64,000 nt of DNA, taken from Macrostomum hystrix. Its lineage: Eukaryota; Animalia; Platyhelminthes. The stretch is taken from the NCBI GenBank assembly GCA_950097015.1, contig CATNEN010000014.1, positions 1,736,001 to 1,800,000 of the forward strand, read 5' to 3'. Shown here in pieces: positions 13,683 through 63,886 of the stretch (position 1 is its first letter; each line of letters begins with the position of its first letter). The notes beneath the pieces were generated by a model. The model was not told the DNA's origin and made no database searches. It saw nothing but the letters and a program-made list of their open reading frames with translations. The translations under genes and the position numbers were made by a program.

Positions 13683-18573
<4,891 letters not shown>

Positions 18574-19620
18574 GGCTGTCTTTGCTGTGACTCGGAAAAC
18601 TGGCAAAATAAAACTGCCGGCGCGACAGGCGAAGTTCCTCGAGAGACCGTCTGTCCTGGTCCTGCCGTGTCCCGTGCTGCCCCTCGGAGGCTCTCCTATT
18701 TAGCTCTCCCTGCTTTACACTGCTAGGGAGTGGGGTGGCTGCCACTCTCTCACTCGCTAGATTTCTCCGAGCTTCGCGGTGGGCCCTGGCGAGTTGCGCA
18801 ATGGCCCATTCAGACCCCCGCCGGGCGCACACGGGGAACAGCGAATGGGAGGCAGGGGAGAGAGAAGGCTTGGGAAAGGATTTTTGTCAGTGTGGGATGG
18901 GAGCATCAGAATTGGAGAATCTTAGCGACCTCAACTGCCAGCGTGGGCAGAGGGGAATCCTATCCCATTTGTAGAGGGGAGAATCGAGGACGCGGCTTTC
19001 CGATTCGTTTTCCCGGCTGACCTGGCGGTGACCCGCTGAGGCTGTGGAGGTTGAGTCACGCTAGGGAGAAATTCCGGGACTCGGAGGGATGAAATGTGAG
19101 GGGAGATGTTGCGTCATATTTTCGCTTATCACCAGCTCCCTCGGAGGGGGAACAATAGGCTATTGTTATAAGCTCTGGGGACAGCACCGGGGCTTGTAGA
19201 GCCTGGCGGGTCGGGGCCAGGCTTATGAAGGAACTCGCGTTCTCAACGACCTTTAAATGACCCGATGCTTCGGGGCCGAGGACGCGCACACCGCCGAAGG
19301 GTCTGTGGAGGGAGGGGGTGGTGGGCGGGGCAAACAAAGGAATCCTCGCTTGTCCCCCGCCTGACCCCGGAGAGAATGTCAAAGTCAAAGGCAACCAAAA
19401 GTCAACTTCACCGCCAAGCCAGACCGAGCTGAGCCGATAAAACTTGACAGCTGCTCACAGCTGGGTGAGTAATGTCAAATCAAATCAAATCTTGCTTTTC
19501 TTATTGCTTTTTAAGATTTTGGATTCCGCCTGAGGTTGGTCGGTTAAAATTCTAATTTACTCTGAAGGGAAAATTGTTTACATCATGTGTCGGCTTTTCA
19601 CAAGTTGTTAATTAAATATC

Positions 19621-20445
19621 CTTCCATTCCCAACTTCACAGTTCCATTCCCAACTTCACAGTTCCATTCCCAACTTCACAGTGCCATTCCCAACTTTACA
19701 GTGCCATTCCCAACTTCACAGTTCCATTCCCAACTTCACAGTTCCATTCCCAACTTCACAGTTCCATTCCCAACTTCACAGTTCCATTCCCAACTTCACA
19801 GTTCCATTCCCAACTTCACAGTTCCATTCCCAAATTCATAGTTCCATTCCCAACTTCACAGTTCCATTCCCAACTTCACAGTTCCATTCCCAACTTCATA
19901 GTTCCATTCCCAACTTCACAGTTCCATTCCCAACTTCACAGTTCCATTCCCAACTTCACAGTTCCATTCCCAACTTCACAGTTCCATTCCCAACTTCACA
20001 GTTCCATTCCCAACTTCATAGTGCCATTCCCAACTTCACAGTTCCATTCCCAACTTCATAGTTCCATTCCCAACTTCATAGTGCCATTCCCAACTTCACA
20101 GTTCCATTCCCAACTTCACAGTGCCATTCCCAACTTCATAGTGCCATTCCCAACTTCATAGTGCCATTACCAACTTCACAGTTCCATTCCCAACTTCACA
20201 GTTCCATTCCCAACTTCACAGTTCCATTCCCAACTTCACAGTTCCATTCCCAACTTCACAGTTCCATTCCCAACTTCACAGTTCCATTCCCAACTTCACA
20301 GTTCCATTCCCAACTTCATAGTGCCATTCCCAACTTCACAGTTCCATTCCCAACTTCACAGTTCCATTCCCAACTTCACAGTTCCATTCCCAACTTCACA
20401 GTGCCATTCCCAACTTCACAGTGCCATTCCCAACTTCACAGTTCC
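19621..20445. repeat. 20-bp minisatellite
   Basis: Unit GTTCCATTCCCAACTTCACA. Confidence 0.95.
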
Positions 20446-20626: not shown

Positions 20627-21229
20627 GCCAATTCCAGCGCTCTACCGTCATCCGACACTGGATCGCGCTCTATTGCGCAACTCTCGCCTTCCGTGCTTCA
20701 GGTCCTCCACTTCCGGCGGGTCTGCCGGCCTGTCTGGTCACGTCTGAAATTTGACACCATCGCATGCAGCTCCGGCCTCACTAAGCTGCACTGTCCACAG
20801 GCCATTTCATTCACACGAGAAATTCCACTGCAGGAAACTTTCGCTTAATCACTCCTGACAACTGGAGGGCGCACGTTCACTGCGCGTGATCGTGGCGCAG
20901 CCCAGGATAGCCTTGCTTAATTGCTACCTGCCCTGCACTTACAACAGTGTGCGGCACCTAGCTCTCAAAGCCAAGCTCGCCTTATCATGTTTAAGGTCAT
21001 TGCTAATGTCAAAGCCGACGTGTCTGGTCACAATATAATCTCAATTGGCGCATGGAAAGAGCGCTCGCACCAGCGACGAATCACGTGATACGCCATCACG
21101 TGCTGCACCTGTTAATTGGGGTGTCATTAAATGCGCCATCGCTAATTGCTGCCTAATACTAAAAATTTCCTCAATATCCCCCAATCATCGACACTGCCGT
21201 TTTCTATTCACAATCACCAATACTTCCGT

Positions 21230-23970
21230 AATCTACCCACAATCACCGACACTGCCGTTATCTACCCACAATCACCGACACTGCCGTTATCTACCCACAA
21301 TCACCGACACTGCCGTTATCTACCCACAATTACCGACACTGCCTTATCTACCAACAATCACCGACACTGCCTTATCTACCAACAATCACCAACACTGCCG
21401 ATATCTACCCACAATCACCGACACTGCCGTTATCTACCCACAATTACCGACACTGCCGTTATCTACCCACAATCACCGACACTGCCGTTATCTACCCACA
21501 ATCACCGACACTGCCGTTATCTACCCACAATCACCGACACTGCCGTTACCTACCCACAATCACCGACACTGCCTTATCTACCAACAATCACCGACACTGC
21601 CTTATCTACCAACAATCACCAACACTGCCGTTATCTACCCACAATTACCGACACTGCCTTATCTACCAACAATCACCGACACTGCCGTTATCTGCCCACA
21701 ATTACCGACACTGCCTTATCTACCAACAATCACCAACACTGCCGATATCTACCCACAATTACCGACACTGCCGTTATCTACCCACAATCACCGACACTGC
21801 CGTTACCTACCCACAATCACCGACACTGCCGTTATCTACCCACAATCACCGACACTGCCGTTATCTACCCACAATCACCGACACTGCCGTTACCTACCCA
21901 CAATCACCGACACTGCCGTTATCTACCCACAATCACCGACACTGCCTTATCTACCAACAATCACCGACACTGCCTTATCTACCAACAATCACCAACACTG
22001 CCGTTATCTACCCACAATTACCGACACTGCCTTATCTACCAACAATCACCGACACTGCCGATATCTACCCACAATCACCGACACTGCCGATATCTACCCA
22101 CAATCACCGACACTGCCGATATCTACCCACAATCACCGACACTGCCGATATCTACCAACAATCACCAACACTGCCGATATCTACCCACAATCACCAACGC
22201 TGCCGATATCTACCCACAATCACCGACACTGCCGATATCTACCCACAATCACCGACACTGCCGATATCTACCAACAATCACCAACACTGCCGTTATCTAC
22301 CAACAATCACCGACACTGCCGATATCTACCCACAATCACCAACGCTGCCGATATCTACCCACAATCACCGACACTGCCGATATCTACCCACAATCACCGA
22401 CACTGCCGATATCTACCAACAATCACCAACACTGCCGTTATCTACCAACAATCACCGACACTGCCGTTATCTACCCACAATCACCGACACTGCCGATATC
22501 TACCAACAATCACCAACACTGCAGTTATCTACCCACAATCACAGACACTGCCGTTATCTACCCACAATCACAGACACTGCCGTTATCTACCCACAATCAC
22601 AGACACTGCCGTTATCTACCCACAATCACCGACACTGCCGTTATCTACCCACAATCACCGACACTGCCGTTATCTACCCACAATCACAGACACTGCCGTT
22701 ATCTACCCACAATCACCGACACTGCCGTTATCTACCCACAATCACCGACACTGCAGTTATCTACCCACAATCACCGACACTGCAGTTATCTACCCAAAAT
22801 CACAGACACTGCAGTTATCTACCCACAATCACCAACACTGCCGTTATCTACCCACAATCACCGACACTGCCGTTATCTACCCACAATCACCAACGCTGCC
22901 GATATCTACCCACAATCACCGACACTGCCGATATCTACCCACAATCACCGACACTGCCGTTATCTACCCACAATCACCGACACTGCAGTTATCTACCCAC
23001 AATCAGCGACACTGCCGTTATCTACCCACAATCACCGACACTGCCGTTATCTACCCACAATCACCGACACTGCCGTTATCTACCCACAATCACCAACACT
23101 GCCGATATCTACCCACAATCACCAACACTGCCGTTATCTACCCACAATCACCAACACTGCCGTTATCTACCCACAATCACAGACACTGCCGTTATCTACC
23201 CACAATCACAGACACTGCCGTTATCTACCCACAATCACAGACACTGCCGTTACCTACCCACAATCACAGACACTGCCGTTATCTACCCACAATCACCGAC
23301 ACTGCCGTTATCTACCCACAATCACCAACACTGCCGATATCTACCCACAATCACCAACACTGCCGTTATCTACCCACAATCACAGACACTGCAGTTATCT
23401 ACCCACAATCACAGACACTGCAGTTATCTACCCACAATCACAGACACTGCAGTTATCTACCCACAATCACAGACACTGCAGTTATCTACCCACAATCACA
23501 GACACTGCAGTTATCTACCCACAATCACCGACACTGCCGTTATCTACCCACAATCACAGACACTGCCGTTATCTACCCACAATCACCGACACTGCCGATA
23601 TCTACCCACAATCACCGACACTGCCGTTATCTACCCACAATCACCGACACTGCCGATATCTACCCAAAATCACCGACACTGCCGTTATCTACCCACAATC
23701 ACCGACACTGCCGTTATCTACCCACAATCACCGACACTGCCGTTACCTACCCACAATCACCGACACTGCCGATATCTACCCACAATCACCGACACTGCCG
23801 TTATTTACCCACAATCACCGACACTGCCGATATCTACCCAAAATCACCGACACTGCCGTTATCTACCCACAATCACCGACACTGCCGTTATCTACCCAAA
23901 ATCACCAACACTGCCGTTATCTACCCACAATCACAGACACTGCCGCTATCTACCCACAATCACCAACATA
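21230..23970. repeat. 29-bp (with 27-bp variants) minisatellite, about 2.7 kb
   Basis: Unit TATCTACCCACAATCACCGACACTGCCGT. Confidence 0.95.
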
Positions 23971-24117: not shown

Positions 24118-25735
24118 TTATTTCATGTCTTGACGCAACATTTTCCAATCGAATAAAGAAAAAAACAAAAGATGGGATAGAATCTCAATCACAAAGGCCT
24201 TGCGCAATGCCTATCCAACTCATTGCAGCTACTCATATTTGTTCACAAGTTGAATATTATTTAATGGCAAGTGCCATTCGCGCCTACGATCAAATAATGT
24301 TGCTGTGCAAAGTTTATATAAATAATTATTCCCTTCTGTTCCTTGATGACCGATGCTGCATTTCACTGGTCGCGTCAGGAGCTCTCCTCACATTTATAAT
24401 GACTTCACAGTGCTCAACTGCTCACTGTGCTCACCCACTCACTCTGCTCACCTACTCACTGTGCTCAACTGCTCACTCTGCTCACCTACTCACCGTGCTC
24501 ACCCACTCACTCTGCTCACCCACTCACTGTGCTCACCCACTCACTCTGCTCACCCACTCACTGTGCTCACCCACTCACTGTGCTCACCCACTCACTGTGC
24601 TCACCCACTCACTCTGCTCACCTACTCACTGTGCTCAACTGCTCACTCTGCTCACCCACTCACCGTGCTCACCCACTCACTCTGCTCACCAACTCACTGT
24701 GTTCACCCACTCACTCTGCTCACCCACTCACTGTGCTCACCCACTCACTGTGCTCACCCACTCACTGTGCTCACCCACTCACTGTGCTCACCCACTCACT
24801 CTGCTCACCCACTCACTGTGCTCACCCACTCACTGTGCTCACCCACTCACTCTGCTCACCTACTCACTGTGCTCACCCACTCACTGTGCTCACCCACTCA
24901 CTCTGCTCACCTACTCACTGTGCTCACCCACTCACTCTGCTCACCCACTCACTGTGCTCACCCACTCACTGTGCTCATTCACTCACTGCGCTCACCTACT
25001 CACTGTGTTCATCCACTCACTGTGCTCACCCACTCACTGCGCTCACCTACTCACTGTGTTCATCCACTCACTGTGCTCACCCACTCACTCTGCTCACCTA
25101 CTCACTCTGCTCACCCTCTCACTCAGCTCACCCACACACTCCGCTCACCCACACACTCCGCTCACCCACACACTCCGCTCACAAACACACACTCTTCTCA
25201 CCCACACACTCCGCTCACCCACACACTCTGAGCTGAGCTCTACTCGAAGAGTGGCAGATCTTCAATCTTAATAAATTGTCTGGACCTGAAGGTTGAAAGA
25301 TACGATTGCTCAGAGATTTGCTGCTACCGCAGGATCAACTGTTGGAGGGAAGGGATTAAGGATAGCTCGTCGAAAGTTAGGGTTCGAAAGGTGGACGAGG
25401 ACAAGCTGACCGCCAAGCCCAAAAAACTCCCGATATCCGCACTGCGCTACTGAAAGTAGAAAAAAGAACATTTTCTGGTGAAATTAAAAAACAACTCACA
25501 GGTTGCACGGAGCAGGCTATCAGGTAGAGCAGTATGAGCAGGCCAATCAGACCGCACAGGGTTCCGGTGGCGATGACCCAGCTGTCCGAGCGTGAGTCCG
25601 GAGACAGGCTGGAGGCCGGGGCCACGTACTGGGACACGGTCACCGTCACCGTCAGGGTGCCGTTCGAGGCTGTCCTGATGGCCGACACGACCAGGCTGTT
25701 TCGGATGTCAATTTATACCATTTAGCTTTAGCTGA
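24118..25735 (-). pseudogene. Partial duplicate of the 3' end of the mucin-like gene (TM exon, tail exon, downstream region)
   Basis: Near-identical to 29984-30815. TM exon 25500-~25710 is conserved but has an in-frame TAA just upstream and a 1-nt phase shift at its donor. The tail exon reads SRQFIKIEDLPLFE*. No 5' exons are present. Confidence 0.7.
24405..25230. repeat. 17-bp minisatellite
   Basis: Unit CTCACTGTGCTCACCCA. A short homologue lies at 30230-30350. Confidence 0.95.
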
Positions 25736-26939
25736 CGGGCTAAAGTATTTGGCTGTAACAATGCTAGTTAGGTTGTTGCATTGACTGTCTGTTGGTGACA
25801 TTACCTGTTACTTTATCGTCTGGTGTTTGTTGCATTGGAAGTACTAGTATTGACTAGATAGCGCAGATACTTATTGTGCTTACAATATTCCACTTGTACT
25901 CCTGTCCATTTTTCATTTTCAAATAGACCTCTGCTCTAGTCGCCACATTGTGGCAGTGTGCTAAATAGCATTCAGACTGTCCCACCCTTCAGCTCTAGTC
26001 TTGTCTAGCCGTGAAAACGGCGAACATCAATAAGAAATGCACATGGTTGCTTCTAGAATCTAGATTATTGTGCTATTAATTTGAGCGAGAGTCAGAGCAT
26101 TGTTTAGGGGCCTGCTTGTGTAACTTCACATCACTGGGAGCTAATTCTACTGGAACATTAAAAATGTTTGGACTCTAGGACCTGAACTCGAATCCATTCA
26201 GTATCCTCATTCTGCAATGGCGTCTGCAAGCGGTGCATTGAAGGCGGCGGAGGCAGGTAAAGTCGATGAAGTACTCAGCATCCTGACTATTCTGGACGTC
26301 GCAGTTGACACTACTGACGAGCTTGGCAGGACGCCACTGATACTAGCAGCGCGTCGAGGACAGACGGCGGTAGCGAGAATCCTGGTGAAAGTTCCAGCAC
26401 AGCTGGACCTTCGCGACTATGAAGGATGGAGCGCTTTGTTCTGGGCCACACGTCACGGCCACACCGGCGTCCTGCAGCTGCTGGTCGAAGCTGGAGCTGA
26501 CACTGAGCTACCCACTCTGCTGCTGGTGTCTCCGATCTATGTGGCGTGCTTCGGCAATCACCCGGCTGCTGCGCGCTGCCTGCTGCAGTCCGGGCTGAAC
26601 TGTGATTTCCAGCGGGATGTGGGCTACGCTGCCCTGCACATGGCAGCACAGAGCTGCAGCTCATTCGGCCTCTTCTCGGACTCGCGAACCCGCATTTGCG
26701 GGACAACGAAGGTCGGACGCCGATCTTTGTGGCTGCGCTCTACGGAAAAGCGGAGGCCGTCGAAACTCTCGTAGCTTCGGGCGCAGATCCGAACATCCCG
26801 GATACCTGCGGTGCTCACCCGCTGCACGTGGCAGCCGTCATGGGACACGAGAGCGTCGTGAGCTGCCTGCTCTGCCACTGTCTCAGCTCCGACGACTTCA
26901 GCATCACCGACTCTGCCGGTCTGAGTGCAGCAGCTGCTG

Positions 26940-27305
26940 CCTGCTGCTTTGGTCAGACCAGAACGCTGCTTCAGCTGCTGCGGCACTGCTCCAGCTGCTT
27001 TGGTCAGACCAGAACGCTGCTTCAGCTGCTGCGGCACTGCTGCCTGCTGCTTTGGTCAGACCAGAACGCTGCTTCAGCTGCTGCGGCACTGCTGCCTGCT
27101 GCTTTGGTCAGACCAGAACGCTGCTTCAGCTGCTGCGGCACTGCTCCTGCTGCTTTGGTCAGACCAGAACGCTGCTTCAGCTGCTGCGGCACTGCTCCTG
27201 CTGCTTTGGTCAGACCAGAACGCTGCTTCAGCTGCTGCGGCACTGCTCCTGCTGCTTTGGTCAGACCAGAACGCTGCTTCAGCTGCTGCGGCACTGCTGC
27301 CTGCT
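26940..27305. repeat. Exonic 51/52-bp tandem repeat, 7 copies, in the ANK region
   Basis: TTTGGTCAGACC recurs at 26948, 26999, 27051, 27103, 27154, 27205 and 27256. Confidence 0.95.
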
Positions 27306-28345
27306 GCGGCGAGCTTCTGCAGCTTCCACTCGAAGTCAGCGACTTGCTGAAGACCGCTCAAATGATTCTGTCAGACGTGGATGGCAACGGCACAAGTTCG
27401 TTTAAGTGAGTTCAAGGAAACCTGGTTTGTTATTAATTTGAGCAAGGCCGATCAATTTGATTGTCTCAACAGGCTTTCGGCAAGTCAAGTGAGCTTGGAG
27501 CTGCATGAGGCCCTGAATGCAGCCGGCTTCACTAGGCAGAGAGCCAGGGTGCAGAGCGCACTCGGTCAGGTGCTGCAGGACATCCTGCGCAAGCGTCACC
27601 AAAACTCGACTCGTGATCACATTGTTGGCAGCTACGCCGAGGGCTGGGGCAACAGCCTGTGTCTCAATGGCAACACTGACCTGGATTCCGACATTGATGT
27701 ATCCATTATTCAAGACGAAAGGCTGTTCCACATTCGAGGCTTGTGCCAGTGTTCGAATGTTACTGACAATGCACAGCTTGTGAGCTACAACAATGGTCAC
27801 GTGATGTCAGAAGGATTAGGTGATTACATTGGTAGTTCTTAGAGAGAAAATTGCCTCCAAATTGACACAACAACTAGTCCCTGCCCATTGCAGCCTCGAA
27901 TCCAGCATTGTCATTCTTCGGGTCTGCCGTGAGGTCGGCAATCGACTGGGTGAGCGCCTACCCATGTTGCTGCTACCCAGCAATGAAGATTTTCGAGCCA
28001 TCTTTCTCCACAAAAATCGATGCTTCGGTGATGGATTCCCTGAGACGAACGATGTCCACCTTGCCGTGCCACCTGGTGACTGCGGCGCCTCCTGGCATGG
28101 GGGGTCAGCAGCTGAGAATCAGCTCACACTTTCTGGAGCGATGTCTGATGCAGAACCTCCCCGATGTTCATGGCCAGGAGTTCGTGTTGCTCAAGCACCT
28201 CATCAAGAAGGTGATTTTAGTCAAGGTGGACAGAATGAAGACGTACCACGCCAAGTCCAACTTGTTCTACCTGCTCGGCGAGCTGCGATCAAACTCGGAC
28301 AGAGATCAGTCCATGTGGCACTTCTTCCCCACATGCACTGAGGCT

Positions 28346-28851
28346 ACTTGAGGTCAGGCCACAGTGACAAGGCTCTGATTATCCAAGCTGTACTTGAGGT
28401 CAGGCGACAGTGACAAGGCTCTGATTATCCAAGCTGTACTTGAAGTCAGGCCACAGTGACAAGGCTCTGATTATCCAAGCTGTACTTGAGGTCAGGCCAC
28501 AGTGACAAGGCTCTGATTATCCAAGCTGTACTTGAAGTCAGGCCACTGTGACAAGGCTCTGATTATCCAAGCTGTACTTGAAGTCAGGCCACAGTGACAA
28601 GGCTCTGATTATCCAAGCTGTACTTGAGGTCAGGCGACAGTGACAAGGCTCTGATTATCCAAGCTGTACTTGAAGTCAGGCCACAGTGACAAGGCTCTGA
28701 TTATCCAAGCTGTACTTGAAGTCAGGCCACAGTGACAAGGCTCTGATTATCCAAGCTGTACTTGAAGTCAGGCCACAGTGACAAGGCTCTGATTATCCAA
28801 GCTGTACTTGAGGTCAGGCCACAGTGACAAGGCTCTGATTATCCAAGCTGT
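28346..28851. repeat. 46-bp tandem repeat, exactly 11 copies, inside cGLR exon 3
   Basis: Unit ACTTGAGGTCAGGCCACAGTGACAAGGCTCTGATTATCCAAGCTGT. Confidence 0.95.
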
Positions 28852-29592
28852 CGATGAGACAATTAAAATTCTGCCACAGCTAGCAGTTGTGTTTAGGAAA
28901 CACCTGAGACCCGAAGCTGTGGACCCGAAATCCACCTGAACTTTCACCCGTTCTGCATTCTACCCTACCTGGAACCCATCGAAATCTCTCAGTTTGGAAA
29001 CCTGGAGTATCATGAAGTTTATGATGTTGTTCGCTGTGTTGTGTTCCAACTGATGGACAAAGACAGCAGCTGTCAGCGTGACATCCTGGCAACTGTGAGC
29101 AGAATTCCACTCTGCTTTCACACCGTCAGATGCGCTCTTTCAGTGCTTGTGTACTTAAAGTTCAACCAGCAGGGGAGGGCCAGAAACACGCTGCTGGAAT
29201 TCGTGGAAAGCAAGACCGAACCGGTGATGTTTGCACCTGGCAGTGTTCCCCGATCAGAGGAGGAACTCCGCAGCACAGTTTGGGATCGCCTGTGCAACTC
29301 AGATTCTTCGTGGAAATTTTGCTTTCGAAAAGTGAACCGCTGCAAACTGCAGTTCCTGCCGGAGCCGATTGAGCAGTTCTTCCCGCTCCGCATCATGTAC
29401 CTGGACTGGTACTGTTTCAATTTCAACTGTTGCAGGCCGAGCTGGTCGCTCTAAGCGTGGGAAGTTCGCTAACTCAACTCGTCTCAGAGATCCGTGGCGC
29501 CAGTGCAGCTGACGATTGAGCCATTGGTTTGAGGCTGTATAGTCTCAGTACTCATTCATTGGGGGGATGCATTTGCAGCGTGTCTAGTTTCT

Positions 29593-29820
29593 GTGTGTAG
29601 CCCAGTGGCTAGAGCTCGAAATCCCGACTTGAAGGTCGCGGGTTCGATTCCCGACTCCACTAAAAGAATTTGTATCCTTTAGCAAGGTAACTAGCTCTAC
29701 TTTGCTTCAGTTAGCCCAGCTGTTAAATGGGTTCCAGAATTAGCTGGGGTAATTCAGGGTGGGTGTCCCCCCAGTCCATGGACTGAACAGCTGTACGCAG
29801 CTGCGGCTGTGCAATCAACA
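29593..29820 (+). mobile_element. tRNA-derived SINE, family A
   Basis: A box TAGCCCAGTGG (29598) and B box GGTTCGATTCC (29641). Core ...CCTTTAGCAAGG...CCCAGCTGTTAAATGGGT and tail CCAGTCCATGGACTG are shared with other copies in the window. Confidence 0.7.
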
Positions 29821-30389
29821 AAACGCCTTATATTTGTCATAAATTTCTTAAGTCAGTACCCCTCGCTGATCAGGAGCATCACCCAATACACAATACACAA
29901 GTTTTTAAACCCAATAAAAAAATAACTGCAAGGCAGCGCAGAGATCATTTTTGGCAAAAGAGGAAAATTATATTTTTCAAAGCTTTATTTCATGACTTCA
30001 CAGCAACATTTTCCAATCGAACAAAGAAAAAAAATGGGACAGCATCTCTATAACAAAAGCATCTCCGACTCATTAATGCTATACATTTTTGTAAAGCTAA
30101 ATTAAAAAAAGCATAATTAAAAAATATATTTTTAATTCTCTCTTTTTTCAATTGCAAGGGCAATTCACACCTACCATTGAATAATGGTGCTGCGCAAAGT
30201 AAAAAAACCTATTCATTTCTGTTTCTTGGTACTCACTGTGCTCACCTACTCACTGAGCTCATCTACTCACTGTACTCAATAACTCACGAAGCTCACCCTC
30301 TCATTGTGCTCACCCACTCACTGTGCTCACCCAATCACTGTGCTCACCCACTCTCTCTGCTCCCCAGTTCGCAGTCTCAGAGCTGAGCT

Positions 30390-33300
30390 CTACATGAAGA
30401 GTGGCAGATCTTCATTCTTAGCCGGTCGTCTGGATCTGAAGATCAAAAGAAAGGTGCGACTGCTCAGAGATTCGCTACCACAAAGCAGAACAAGCTGGCT
30501 GCCTAGTCTAATAGAACTCCCGATATCCGCACTGCGCTACTGAAAGTAGAAATGCGAACATTTTCTGATGAATTAAAAAACAACTCACCGATGCACGGAG
30601 CAGGCTATCAGGTAGAGCAGTATGAGCAGGCCAATCAGACCGCACAGGGTTCCGGTGGCGATGACCCAGCTGTCCGAGCGTGAGTCCGGAGACAGGCTGG
30701 AGGCCGGGGCCACGTTCTGGGACACGGTCACCGACACCGTCAGGGTGCCGTTCGAGGCTGTGCTGATGGCCGACACGACCAGGCTGTTTCGGATGTTAAT
30801 TTGGTGCTTTAGCTGACTTGGTTTAGGTGTACAGCTAGTGGCACAGCCCCAGCTGTTGCTCGGTGATTCCAAACACAGTGTACCGTTTTTCAGTCCGTGG
30901 ACTGGCTAGCCCGCCACACGAAACTTCATTTCCACCCCAGCTACTGCTGTTACCAATTTTACAGCTGGGTGACCCAAAGCAAGAGGGTTAAATTGTCACC
31001 TTAGAGATCAAGGTGACAAATTATCTCCCATTTGCTGAGATGCGAACTCACGACATTTTAGTGCCCTACCTTAAATATTGATCGACCCAAAATGAATATT
31101 TGCGCTTGGCAGTTAGCTTGCCTAAGCCTTTTCGTTCGCCAATAAACTGAGGACTCTGCTTATGTCTGTTACACAGTAACATTAGCTTTGGCCATAGACT
31201 TGCTTTGCGTTGGCTACATGTCACGAAAAACCACCCTTTTGGCCATAGACTATTTGTCTGCGAGTTTTTTATCCAAGCTACCCCGATATGTGAAGTTTGA
31301 ATGTGCCTAAATCTTCCAAGCTTGTTGTCTATGGAAAAAACTCAGACAAAGGATTCCCCAATGACAAACCTGGTAAAGTCCACGGAGCTGATCAGCAGCT
31401 GGACAGTCTGCACAGTCAGGCTGAAGACTCCGTTGGGAGCGGAGCGCCTTCGTCGGCGTCGTGGATTTGCTGTGGTTGGGGCCGTTAATGAAGGCGACGT
31501 CGTTGCGGCCGCAGTTGACCTTGATGTAGGCATTGCCGTAGGGGTAGAAGTGGCAGCAGTTGGCCCAGCGGCAGCAGTTGACGCAGCACCAGCAGTTGAC
31601 GCAGCAGCAGCAGTTGAACCAGCGGCAGCCATTGACCCACCGGCAGCCGTTGACGCAGCAGCAGCAGTTGACGCAGCAGCAGCAGTTGAACCAGCGGCAG
31701 CCATTGACCCGCCGGCAGCAGTTGACGCAGCAGCAGCAGTTGACGCAGCAGCAGCAGTTGAACCAGCGGCAGCCATTGACCCACCGGCAGCCGTTGACGC
31801 AGCAGCAGCAGTTGAACCAGCGGCAGCCATTGACCCACCGGCAGCCGTTGACGCAGCAGCAGCAGTTAACCCAGTGGCTGAAGTTGACCCAGCAGCAGCA
31901 GTTGACCCAGCGGAACTGTAGACTAGCAGCTGACACAGCGCCGATTCACCCCTCGGGTTCAGCTTAATGAGGAATTGAGTGTGCGATGAGCTTCCAGAGG
32001 CGCCGAAGTAGGTGACATCCGCGGCGCTGCTCATTGCGGCACAGTTGGCTGGGCTGCGGGCAACTCCTACTGGCCTGAGGAGGGGGAGAAATAAGAACCT
32101 GTTAGACACCAGAACCTGTTAGACACCAGAACCTGTTAGACACCAGAACCTGTTAGACACTAGAACCTGTTAGACACTAGAACCTGTTAGACACTAGAAC
32201 CTGTTCGACACTAGAACCTGTTAGACACTAGAACCTGTTAGACACTAGAACCTGTTCAACACTAGAACCTGTTAGACACTAGAACCTGTTAGACACTAGA
32301 ACCTTTTAGACACTAGAACCTGTTAGACACTAGAACCTGTTAGACACTAGAACCTGTTAGACACTAGAACCTGTTCAACACTAGAACCTGTTAGACACTA
32401 GAACCTGTTAGACACTAGAACCTGTTCGACACTAGAACCTGTTAGACACTAGAACCTGTTAGACACTAGAACCTGTTCGACACTAGAAGCTGTTCGACAC
32501 TAGAAACTGTTAGACACTAGAACCTGTTAGACACTAGAACCTGTTAGACACTAGAACCTGTTCCACACTAGAACCTGTTAGACACTAGAACCTGTTAGAC
32601 ACTAGAACCTGTTCGACACTAGAACCTGTTAGACACTAGAACCTGTTAGACACTAGAACCTGTTCGACACTAGAAGCTGTTCGACACTAGAACCTGTTAG
32701 ACACTAGAACCTGTTCGACACTAGAACCTGTTAGACACTAGAACCTGTTAGACACTAGAACCTGTTCGACACTAGAACCTGTTAGACACTAGAACCTGTT
32801 AGACACTAGAACCTGTTAGACACTAGAACCTGTTCCACACTAGAACCTGTTAGACACTAGAACCTGTTAGACACTAGAACCTGTTCGACACTAGAACCTG
32901 TTAGACACTAGAACCTGTTAGACACTAGAACCTGTTCGACACTAGAAGCTGTTCGACACTAGAAACTGTTCGACACTAGAACCTGTTCGACACTAGAACC
33001 TGTTAGACACTAGAACCTGTTCGACACTAGAACCTGTTAGACACTAGAACCTGTTAGACACCAGAACCTGTTAGACACTAGAACCTTTTAGACACCAGAA
33101 CCTGTTAGAAACCAGAACCTGTTAGACACTAGAACCTGTTAGACACTAGAACCTGTTAGACACTAGAACCTGTTAGACACTAGAACCTGTTCGACACTAG
33201 AACCTGTTAGACACTAGAACCTTCTCGATACCAGATTGTATTATTTAGCCGACCTACCAGCCAGTGGATCCGGGGCAGCACCTCAGGAAGTTGTCACCCT

Positions 33301-37327: not shown

Positions 37328-40300
37328 ATGCCAGGTGTAAACAGGCGCCAGGCATCACGGCCTCGCTGTCTTCACGGATTTCCCGGCAAGCTGTTCCGCC
37401 AGAAGAGCCTCAGCGAGGCCCGCTCGCTGGAGACACCGTTGAAGCGCTGCCTTGGCGTCCACCAGCTGATCTTCTACGGCATCGCCCACATGGCCGGGGC
37501 CGGCATCTACGTGCTTGCCGGCACCGTCATCAAGACCAAAGCAGGTGCGCGGGGTCCGTTGTCCGTTGTCTTTCTGGATAGGTAAATAGTCTGGCTGGAT
37601 GGGTAGATAGTCCTGCTGGATGGGTAGATAGTCCTGCTGGATGGGTAGATAGTCCTTCTGGATGGGTAGATAGTCCTGCTGGATGGGTAGATAGTCCTGC
37701 TGGATGGGTAGATAGTCCTGCTGGATGGGTAGATAGTCCTGCTGGATGGGTAGATAGTCCTTCTGGATGGGTAGATAGTCCTGCTGGATGGGTAGATAGT
37801 CTTGCTGGATAGGTAAATAGTCTGGCTGGATGGATCGATAGTATATCCGGTAGATAGGTCGGTGATCCGAGAGTCATGCCTATTAATCGATACAGAGCTG
37901 CAGGCTGCAATGCATCCTGGCCCCGTAATCATTTTGCTTCCGCAACGTTTGTTGCAGCCAGCAATTTGTGAGCCGGATTAAACCGGATCGGGAAATGTTG
38001 TCCCGTTTCTAATTTTGAGTCGAATCGATTCGCACTGAGAACACAGCACTGAGCTCTGAACTGCAACTTCCGCAGCCTCTTTACCTCGCCAAGTCGAACT
38101 CATTATCCAGTTACACGTAAGACATCAGTTATGTAGACTACCTGTGAGATGCCAGTCATCAACAGGCAGTCAGCTTCTTCGATGGCGAGTTCAATTGGGA
38201 AACCTCTATGAACTTTTGTGGACACCATCAGGAAATTTTCATTCAAGCTTCCATAAACTTATGAGGGAATCCTCAATGACATTGGGCGGGAAACTCACAT
38301 GACAAAGGAGGTCAAAGCAAACAACACGACTTTATTGGGGTGGCGTGGCAGAGTATTTAACGGGTTTGGCTGTCACACCAAGGTCCGTGAGCTCGATTCC
38401 GCGTCGAGGCCACGAGAAGGCTTCGGAAGCTCAGGTGAGCAGCTCAGGTAGCGGCTCACTGGTTCGATTCGCCTCCCCGTGTCCAGGCCCCGCAGCGGCC
38501 CTGAGCTTCCTCCTGTGCGCCCTGCTCAGCGTGTTCACCGGCCTATGCTACGTCGAGTTCTCAACGCTGATCCCGCGAGCCGGCAGCTGCTACACCTTCA
38601 CCTACATCACACTGGGCGAGCTGCCAGCTTTCCTTGTCGGCTGGACAATGATCTCCGACCTGGTCATTGGCATGGCCTCGGTGGCGAAGGCCTTCAGCAG
38701 CACGGTGAACGCTATCACGCACCAGGCGATCAGCAACGCCACGCAGGCGCACCTCGGCACCCTGCCGGAGTCCGACTACCTCGATCCGAACGTTGACATC
38801 GTCGCTTTTAGCCTGATCATCGCCTTGATGCTCCTGACACTGACCGGAGCCGCCATCTCAATGAGCGTCAACATGGTGCTGAGCGCAGTCCAGTGCGTCT
38901 GCCTCGCCCTCATGGCGGGCGCATGCTACGTGCTCGGCTCGCCCGAGAACTGGGGGCCTCAGAACGGCGGCTTCTTTCCATTCGGCGTGCCCGGCGTCAT
39001 CAACGGCGCCACCGTGGCCATCTTCGCCTTCTCTGGCTTCGAAGCCATCGCCAACGCGGCTGAGGAATGCAAGGACCCGCGGCGCAGCCTGCCCACGGCT
39101 CTGCTGACCTCCCTGGGCATTATCACGCTGCTGTACTTCGCCTCCAGCCTCGGCTTGTCCTACCTGACCCACTACAGCGAACTCGACGCCGGCTCGCCTT
39201 TCGTTGTGGCCTTTCAGGCTCGCGGCGCCGCCTGGCTGTCCTACGTGGCGGCCGGCGGAACCCTCCTGGCCACCGGCGCCACCAAGCTGGCCACCATCTA
39301 CGTCATGCCGCGTCTCTTCTACGCCCTGGCGGCCGACGGCGTCATCTTCCCGTGCTTTGCCTACGTCCAGCCGCGCCTCGGCGTGCCGCTGGTCGGCCTG
39401 CTGGTCGGCGGCCTGCTTTCCGCCCTGCTGGCCCTGGTGTTCAACATCCACACCTTGGCTAGCTTTGTATCCATGGGGGTCCTGCTGTCCTACCTCATGG
39501 TGGGGGTGGATCTGTTCTACCTGCGCTACCTGCTGCACAGGTGGGAGGCCTGTCCGCTGCGGGCCTGGGCCTCTGGCGGGTCCCGCGTGTCAGGCTGGCT
39601 GGCCAGACGGTCCACCATGAAGCTACTGTTCGTCAGTTTCCTGGCTGCCAGTCTAGCCACGGGCCTGGTGCTTAACTATGTCACACCTGTGCTCACCTGG
39701 TGGTCCTGGCTTGCCACGGTTGCTATGGGAGCCACCAACCTGCTGCTGCTGCTCGCACTGTGCGCCTACCGGCCCACACCTGTGGATGCCGGCGTTTATG
39801 AGGCCCCGCTGATGCCTTTGCCGCCACTGTTGGCCTTCTTAATCAACGCCGTGCTCATCGTGCGGCTGGAATGGCTCACCTGGGTTCGGTTCCTGATCTG
39901 GTCCGTGTTCGGTGAGCATCTTTTTCTATCTGTTTAACTCTACGTATCTCTAGGGCACAGAGAGCGGACTGTCGCCTTGTAGTGAAAGCGTCGTACTCTC
40001 GACTGGAAGGTCGGGGGTTCGATTACCAACCTAACTGGTACAAGTCGTGTCTTTTAGGACAATTAACTCTGGATTGCTTCATTTCACCCAGCAGTAAAGC
40101 GGGTACCATTATTTTAAATTTTTTTTATTATTACTATTATTTTATTTCAATAAGCTAGTAAATAATCCCCTCAGTTGTTGAACTGAAGGACAGCTGCAGT
40201 AGCCATTGTTTAACCATCTCACATTTAAGTATCTATCGCCCTCTCCGCTCAGGCCTGATCATGTACGCTTCCTACGGCTACAAGAACAGCGTCAGCGCCA

Positions 40301-51710: not shown

Positions 51711-63886
<12,176 letters not shown>

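Follow-up and report, generated by a model that had tools for sequence, protein, structure and literature searches.

The 64,000-nucleotide stretch of Macrostomum hystrix DNA analyzed here (contig CATNEN010000014.1, positions 1,736,001 to 1,800,000), which we call the window, carries on its plus strand, at 26217-29454, a gene-like locus in which ankyrin repeats, a linker, a nucleotidyltransferase (NTase) of the cGAS/Mab-21 type and a C-terminal domain of about 170 residues follow one another. In other words, the locus has the architecture of a cGAS-like receptor (cGLR) fused to ankyrin repeats, or ANK-cGLR. Three-frame translation of 26100-29600 on this strand gives a coding-like signal with several changes of frame, and the gene model consists of three exons and two introns, laid out as follows.

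26217-27405, plus strand: exon 1, with the ATG, ankyrin repeats 1-8 and the linker to the NTase; it holds the frameshift in ankyrin repeat 5 (ANK5) and the 51/52-nt array described below.
27406-27472, plus strand: intron 1, 67 nt, GTGAGT...CAG, phase 2, between the linker and the NTase exon.
27473-27819, plus strand: exon 2, the N-lobe of the NTase, with the G-S loop at 27627-27632 and the catalytic D-x-D at 27690-27698.
27820-27893, plus strand: intron 2, 74 nt, GT...AG, phase 1, inside the NTase.
27894-29454, plus strand: exon 3, with the third catalytic aspartate at 27944-27946, the Mab-21-type C-lobe, the C-terminal domain and the stop codon TAA at 29452-29454.
28930-29451, plus strand: the family-specific C-terminal domain, made of helices and a small sheet, 29-36% identical to paralogues.

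The three-exon model follows from the intron positions of a paralogue in Macrostomum lignano, taken together with in-phase GT..AG junctions in the window itself. Namely, the M. lignano protein P0026 (PAA73136.1), mapped onto its own locus (L001), is encoded by exons covering amino acids 1-491, 492-606 and 607-1109, with exon 1 and exon 3 both intronless, and the two introns of the window coincide with its two intron positions (aa 491/492 and 606/607). Removal of intron 1 yields an in-phase junction, ...SSFK joined to LSASQVSLELH, so that the splice from the ankyrin part to the NTase in the original prediction is confirmed, while splicing out intron 2 leaves a spacing of 37 residues between GHV/I and CCYP in both the locus and the paralogues. 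When M. lignano paralogues are used as queries in tblastn, exon 1 is covered over 26214-26926, split over two frames, and exon 2 is matched at 44-51% identity; the exon 3 piece 27896-28348 matches the M. lignano protein P0001 with E 1.1e-41. A third in-phase intron, the 74 nt of 28919-28992, was also considered and rejected: this segment encodes the family-invariant FHPFxILP motif (28942-28953), which is coding in all paralogues, and the paralogue exon 3 is intronless. The GT..AG pair is therefore a coincidence, and what lies here is a frameshift.

The ankyrin part is recognized by Pfam both as Ank_2 (E 6.5e-22 at 26217-26681 and E 4e-12 at 26672-26935) and as Ank (E 1.8e-17 and E 2.4e-14), its repeats of about 33 residues standing in tandem. 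Counted by eye, 26217-26935 contains seven complete repeats plus part of an eighth. As to the enzyme, the motif VGSYAEGWGN is encoded at 27624-27653, DSDID at 27684-27698 and AIDWV at 27938-27952, which together supply the G-S loop and the complete acidic triad (the two aspartates of D-I-D and the aspartate of AIDWV), and the C-lobe motifs LRISSHFLER, KTYHAKS and WHFF are found downstream of AIDWV. To place these residues, we used an alignment of 29 paralogue domains, and a version of the locus read through its breaks, each marked by an X, was also aligned to 13 paralogues. All 29 domains have G60 and S61, D82 and D84, and D140 without exception, and the window keeps every one of these residues; outside the lesions, it retains the family residue in 64 of the 76 aligned columns with conservation of at least 85%. 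The ankyrin repeats and the GSYAEG, DSDID and IDWV motifs of the original prediction are thus all there, the motifs standing on columns conserved in 29 of 29 paralogues, which themselves keep the acidic triad.

By its predicted structure, the enzyme domain of the family has the cGAS/cGLR fold. In particular, the AlphaFold2 (AF2) model of residues 485-1010 of P0026 (predicted local distance difference test, pLDDT, 92; predicted template modeling score, pTM, 0.92) puts G60 and S61 right after a strand at 56-59, D82 and D84 in a strand at 82-96 and D140 in a strand at 138-147. In Foldseek, its best match is cGAS (E 1e-8, template modeling score by target 0.55-0.58), and each of the 50 best structural matches is a cGAS, a cGLR or MB21D2. 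In VIA, the model matches human cGAS (7ftu) with Z 19.9 and a root-mean-square deviation of 3.5 A over 270 aligned residues, MB21D2 with Z 19.4 and the Crassostrea virginica receptor Cv-cGLR1 with Z 18.8, these matches spanning approximately model residues 12-347. The predicted fold of the paralogue is, in other words, the cGAS fold expected for the repaired protein. The bilobal NTase fold is common to the family model, cGAS, Drosophila cGLR1, Cv-cGLR1, S. pistillata Sp-cGLR1 and human MB21D2, and cGAS and the invertebrate cGLRs have the G-S loop and the three-acid triad as the family does, although identity is only 13-21%. The window copy aligns to the M. lignano paralogues over this domain at 44-53% identity, but without the helix at 266-294. 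Searched against the PDB, the family profile built from the 29 domains finds cGLR1 (8gjy, E 3e-6) and cGAS (E 5e-5 to 1e-4) first; MAB21L1 (5eog), of the Mab21L1/2-type proteins of the same superfamily, is a weak profile match (E 0.077). Mab21L proteins are said to have no predicted functional active site (PMC9980059), in contrast to the invariant GS, DxD and D of the flatworm family.

Could the enzyme domain nevertheless belong to some other NTase family, such as OAS, MiD51 or the poly(A)/TUTase-like enzymes? It is true that the NTase pieces of the window match neither Mab-21 (PF03281) nor Mab-21_C (PF20266) in Pfam, even at E <= 1, and that two paralogues give weak, sub-threshold MTPAP-like matches. 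However, Mab-21_C matches 26 of the 29 paralogues at E <= 0.01, and five full-length proteins pass its 24.1-bit cut-off (PF03281 matches none of the paralogues tested); the window has no such match because its 29-residue deletion, which lies in the Mab-21_C region, removes the very segment by which the family profile recognizes cGLR1 and cGAS. The proposed search with these domain models thus succeeded for Ank in the window itself, and for Mab-21_C in the paralogues instead. Moreover, the profile and structure searches just described lead to cGAS, cGLR and MB21D2, and the M. lignano members were classed as cGLRs by Li et al. 2023 (PMC9980059). Altogether, we regard assignment to another NTase family as exceedingly improbable. 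In the ESM Atlas, the piece 27381-27839 matched only clusters of mollusc hypothetical and Mab-21 proteins (0.91-0.94), and the piece 27896-28348 gave nothing useful.

The C-terminal region of about 150 residues noticed at first behind the Mab-21-type helical motifs turns out to be a conserved domain of the family, with the motifs FHPFxILP, YHxIYD, LPDCA, DSAWKFCF and NFDAL recurring across its members. The AF2 model of the window copy of this domain has pLDDT 84.5 and pTM 0.82, and searches with the fold returned generic TPR-like matches only (Foldseek E >= 0.75; VIA Z <= 7.2). This extra domain of approximately 180 residues in the flatworm family has no recognizable counterpart in cGAS, the cGLRs or MB21D2, which sets the family apart from them.

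Despite its readable catalytic motifs, the locus carries six lesions: three that disrupt the frame, two minisatellites derived from coding sequence, a 29-residue deletion and the loss of the tail, with arrays and frameshifts partly combined in this count. Those with a position of their own are the following.

26649-26659, plus strand: frameshift in ANK5, from frame 0 to frame 2, seen in three-frame translation; the high-scoring segment pairs with paralogues change frame between 26654 and 26657.
26926-27307, plus strand: 51/52-nt minisatellite of 7.4 copies (as counted by Tandem Repeats Finder, TRF), arisen from the helix-coding part of ankyrin repeat 8.
28283-28294, plus strand: site where about 29 residues have been deleted in frame, after LFYLLGEL; the C-lobe helix PENLVxLxRxSLxxL... 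is gone.
28343-28851, plus strand: frameshift and 46-nt array; the frame is lost at 28343-28345, and 11 copies extend over 28345-28851.
28897-28941, plus strand: second frameshift of exon 3, where ...FRKHLRPEAVDP (which ends LRPEAVDP) is read in frame 2 and ...IHLNFHPFCILP in frame 1.

After the first of these, frame 0 runs into a stop at 26772-26774, which limits the open reading frame (ORF) from the ATG to 185 codons (26217-26774). The units of the 51/52-nt array are spaced by 51, 52, 52, 51, 51 and 51 nt, and its ORF is open, with the units read in three frames. The deletion corresponds to model residues 266-294 and includes the entire helix at 266-286, which none of the 29 aligned paralogues lacks; W264 and L280, each conserved in 29 of 29, are lost or changed in the window copy. 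In the 46-nt array, whose copies are 97% alike according to TRF, the unit duplicates the coding stretch YLRSGHSDKALIIQA, and, as 46 does not divide by 3, each copy shifts the frame. Stops occur in all three frames of the array; its last copy reads on in frame into DETIKILPQL..., where the alignment to the paralogues resumes. Finally, the encoded protein stops near the NFDALL motif of the paralogues, so that a tail of approximately 90-150 residues is absent, and when this tail was sought downstream of 29454, the best match reached only E about 0.1. Read from the genomic sequence, the locus thus has no intact ORF, given its three frame-disrupting lesions and the stops in the 46-nt array. In this sense, the original prediction, titled as a receptor with intact catalytic motifs, was right about the motifs but underplayed the breakage, implied there only by the words 'repaired protein'; as a working gene, the locus fails, with its frame closing after 185 codons, two further breaks and a conserved C-lobe helix deleted.

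One can argue that the gene is functional after all, and that its breaks are either errors of assembly or consensus, or are removed by unconventional or cryptic splicing. Speaking for this are the intact catalytic triad and the preservation of most conserved residues, the fact that exon 1 is open through the 51/52-nt array, and the existence of formal GT..AG pairs near the ANK5 break and at 28919-28992. As to errors, Logan contigs built independently from the reads of the sequencing run X1, which are genomic as they contain both introns (depth about 90-107), are identical to the window, with 0 differences and 0 gaps, over 26100-26963, 27278-28374 and 28822-29600. The first X1 contig (record 1; 26100-26963) spans the ANK5 break without differences, both true introns are likewise covered, and intron 2 is retained in record 5 of X1 as well as in record 9 of run X2. 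This exact match rules out consensus error. As to splicing, every GT..AG pair that we enumerated as a rescue of the ANK5 frame change deletes a well-formed ankyrin repeat, while the pair at 28919-28992 removes the invariant HPF motif, and the paralogue P0026 has no introns at the candidate rescue sites. What is more, the 46-nt array is duplicated coding sequence with stops in all frames, and the 29-residue deletion does not depend on frame at all. We therefore consider a functional gene improbable.

Another possibility is that the locus encodes only the 185-residue ankyrin protein (about 4.5 repeats, 26217-26774), possibly a decoy or regulator of intact paralogues. There is indeed an ATG-initiated ORF with clean ankyrin repeats here. 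That said, its last 40 or so residues are out-of-frame junk, an exact look-up of the 185-residue product found it not to be on record, and nothing sets this ORF apart from the ordinary truncated ORF of a pseudogene, which makes a dedicated short protein very improbable.

The locus is, then, very probably a pseudogenized copy of the Macrostomum ANK-cGLR family. We infer that it can no longer make the enzyme, and that it died recently, because it still has most of the conserved residues and its arrays are 97% homogeneous; the state of the locus suggests a long functional history before the decay. Several considerations weigh against this conclusion. Namely, the run X1 may come from the assembly's own sample, and a strain-specific allele would thus be compatible with the match as well. 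The high retention of conserved residues could mean that the copy is still partly constrained. Furthermore, the pseudogene call is drawn from genomic DNA, all four sequencing runs used being genomic, and splicing that skips the lesions, or a truncated product, may occur; in particular, one frameshift might in principle be spliced out with the GT..AG pair at 28919-28992, but at the cost of the HPF motif.

How does this copy relate to the rest of the family? A phmmer search with the translation of 27896-28348 returned 72 representative clusters at 50% identity, 53 of them at E <= 1e-10 (best 1.1e-41), with relatives at 45-53% identity. The informative relatives that were looked up are all from M. 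lignano, besides one record in ENA and one weak bacterial match (E 4e-5, 24% identity), which we took for a chance match. Full-length M. lignano relatives combine many ankyrin repeats with Pfam Mab-21_C, several of them above the gathering cut-off. In particular, the M. lignano ANK-cGLRs PAA73136.1 (P0026), PAA86972.1, PAA45980.1 and PAA57558.1, listed in rows 89-91 of Table S3 of Li et al. 2023, have the same domain order as the window locus. They share with it the motifs VGSYxEGWGN, SDID, AxDxV, YHAK, HFF, FHPF and DSAWKF, an identity of 44-53% over the NTase, and, in the case of P0026, both intron positions. The differences are that the window copy comes from another Macrostomum species and is broken by frameshifts, minisatellites, the helix deletion and the loss of the tail, and that longer M. 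lignano paralogues carry approximately 13-26 ankyrin repeats, whereas the window copy has only 7-8. Two of the M. lignano predictions are unusual in themselves: P0001 (A0A1I8GXZ3, 1346 aa) contains two complete cGLR domains, at about 21-530 and 768-1268, and P0002, with 3379 aa, is very long. Proteins of this type are either tandem fusions like OAS2/3 or merged gene models.

The sequencing contigs tell something about the size of the family too. Among the X1 contigs, no close twin of the locus reaches at least 85% identity, except for a patch of 41 nt at 27619-27659 (the G-S loop). The same patch, plus one of 37 nt at 28181-28217, is matched in X3 and X4, which are runs of another organism, and contigs sharing the patches number at least 12 others in X1 and 21-22 in X3 and X4. 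That the patches are common to so many contigs means that the family is large in several species, and that the window copy has no close twin. Over these two stretches, i.e., the G-S loop and the LLKHLIKKV helix, nucleotide conservation is at least 85% while the rest of the gene diverges, which may reflect either strong constraint or gene conversion among paralogues. With the 72 clusters, their M. lignano sources and the G-S patch in contigs of three runs, the lineage-expanded ANK-cGLR family that had been predicted is borne out.

Calling this system little-studied, as was done at the outset, is justified, though the family itself is known: ANK-cGLR fusions already appear in Li et al. 2023 (PMC9980059). 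In that survey, 87% of cGLRs stand alone and some carry ankyrin or TPR modules; fusions of cGLRs with ankyrin and death domains are described in S. pistillata, the former being of the same architecture type as the flatworm family; and 'most platyhelminthes' are said to have no cGLR besides Mab21-like proteins. Five M. lignano members were cloned as NTase-domain constructs (Table S3), rows 89-91 of that table list M. lignano sequences with the same motif series as the window locus, and the 15 active enzymes picked for in-depth analysis include none of these five by name. Table S5 has no Macrostomum row, and our literature search for Macrostomum together with cGLR or STING returned nothing beyond this paper. 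The family and the ANK-cGLR architecture have, in other words, already been catalogued, and the locus is an additional member. No STING-like gene was found within the 64-kb window, and no genome-wide search for STING was made.

The surroundings of the locus include a direct repeat, whose two copies lie 5089 nt apart with the gene between them.

25398-25714, plus strand: upstream copy of an element of approximately 318 nt, 93.7% identical to 30487-30802.
30487-30802, plus strand: downstream copy, likely the orthologue of the single M. lignano copy.

Both copies are approximately 73% identical to that single M. lignano copy (L002:1674-1868). The M. lignano sequence L002 is colinear with the window over an element of about 200 nt, a satellite and a cationic amino-acid transporter. 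In the window, the transporter exon (38345-39934, plus strand) is 85% identical to Mlig012557g1 of M. lignano, and since it is only 85% identical, the window belongs to a Macrostomum congener and not to M. lignano. The order from the transporter to OGT is conserved in both genomes. At the corresponding M. lignano site, the 10 kb that were fetched upstream of the transporter contain no cGLR. Either the gene arrived here by an insertion that duplicated the element, or recombination between the repeats removed it from M. lignano.

A number of other features were noted around the locus. The OGT exon lies at 60885-61829 on the plus strand (Glyco_transf_41, E 7e-75), and an exon with a Rubicon homology domain lies at 17593-18606 on the minus strand. 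Satellites are dense, at 20000-20445, 21178-23968, 24405-25227, 30231-30366, 31552-31913 and 32094-33222, with units of 20, 29, 17, 17, 18/72 and 17 nt in that order; the array at 32094-33222 has its M. lignano counterpart at L002:2529-4853. A similar C-rich unit of 17 nt (TCACTGTGCTCACCCAC) is found on either side of the gene, in each case directly ahead of a copy of the flanking element. Both element copies also contain a minus-strand ORF (25377-25688 and 30585-30872) with a hydrophobic, transmembrane-like stretch (GTLCGLIGLLILLYLIACSV), which is either a real exon or a chance ORF.

What do these results mean for the family as a whole? For intact paralogues only, and by analogy with known receptors of this class, a ligand, possibly bound via the ankyrin solenoid, would activate the NTase, which would then produce an oligonucleotide, cyclic or linear, as the signal to a receptor further downstream. 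A tentative reading, which we consider possible, though on balance doubtful, is that the large Macrostomum ANK-cGLR repertoire, with its at least 70 clusters at 50% identity, its invariant active site and its conserved extra C-terminal domain of unrecognized fold, is a set of innate immune sensors evolving by birth and death, in which the ankyrin solenoid and/or the C-terminal domain, and not a nucleic-acid groove, reads the ligand, and whose receptor is maybe not canonical STING. If this were true, the window locus would be a recently lost receptor, flanked by direct repeats. By itself, the locus is of little importance, as it cannot make the enzyme. That said, it extends the ANK-cGLR family beyond M. 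lignano to at least one other Macrostomum species, it shows how rapidly members turn over, the 10 kb of syntenic M. lignano sequence that were fetched holding no counterpart, and it illustrates a decay that proceeded partly through minisatellites growing out of coding sequence. The interest shifts to the intact paralogues, i.e., to the ligands of their ankyrin and C-terminal domains, to their nucleotide product and to its receptor in a phylum that is reported to have lost most of its cGLR signaling.

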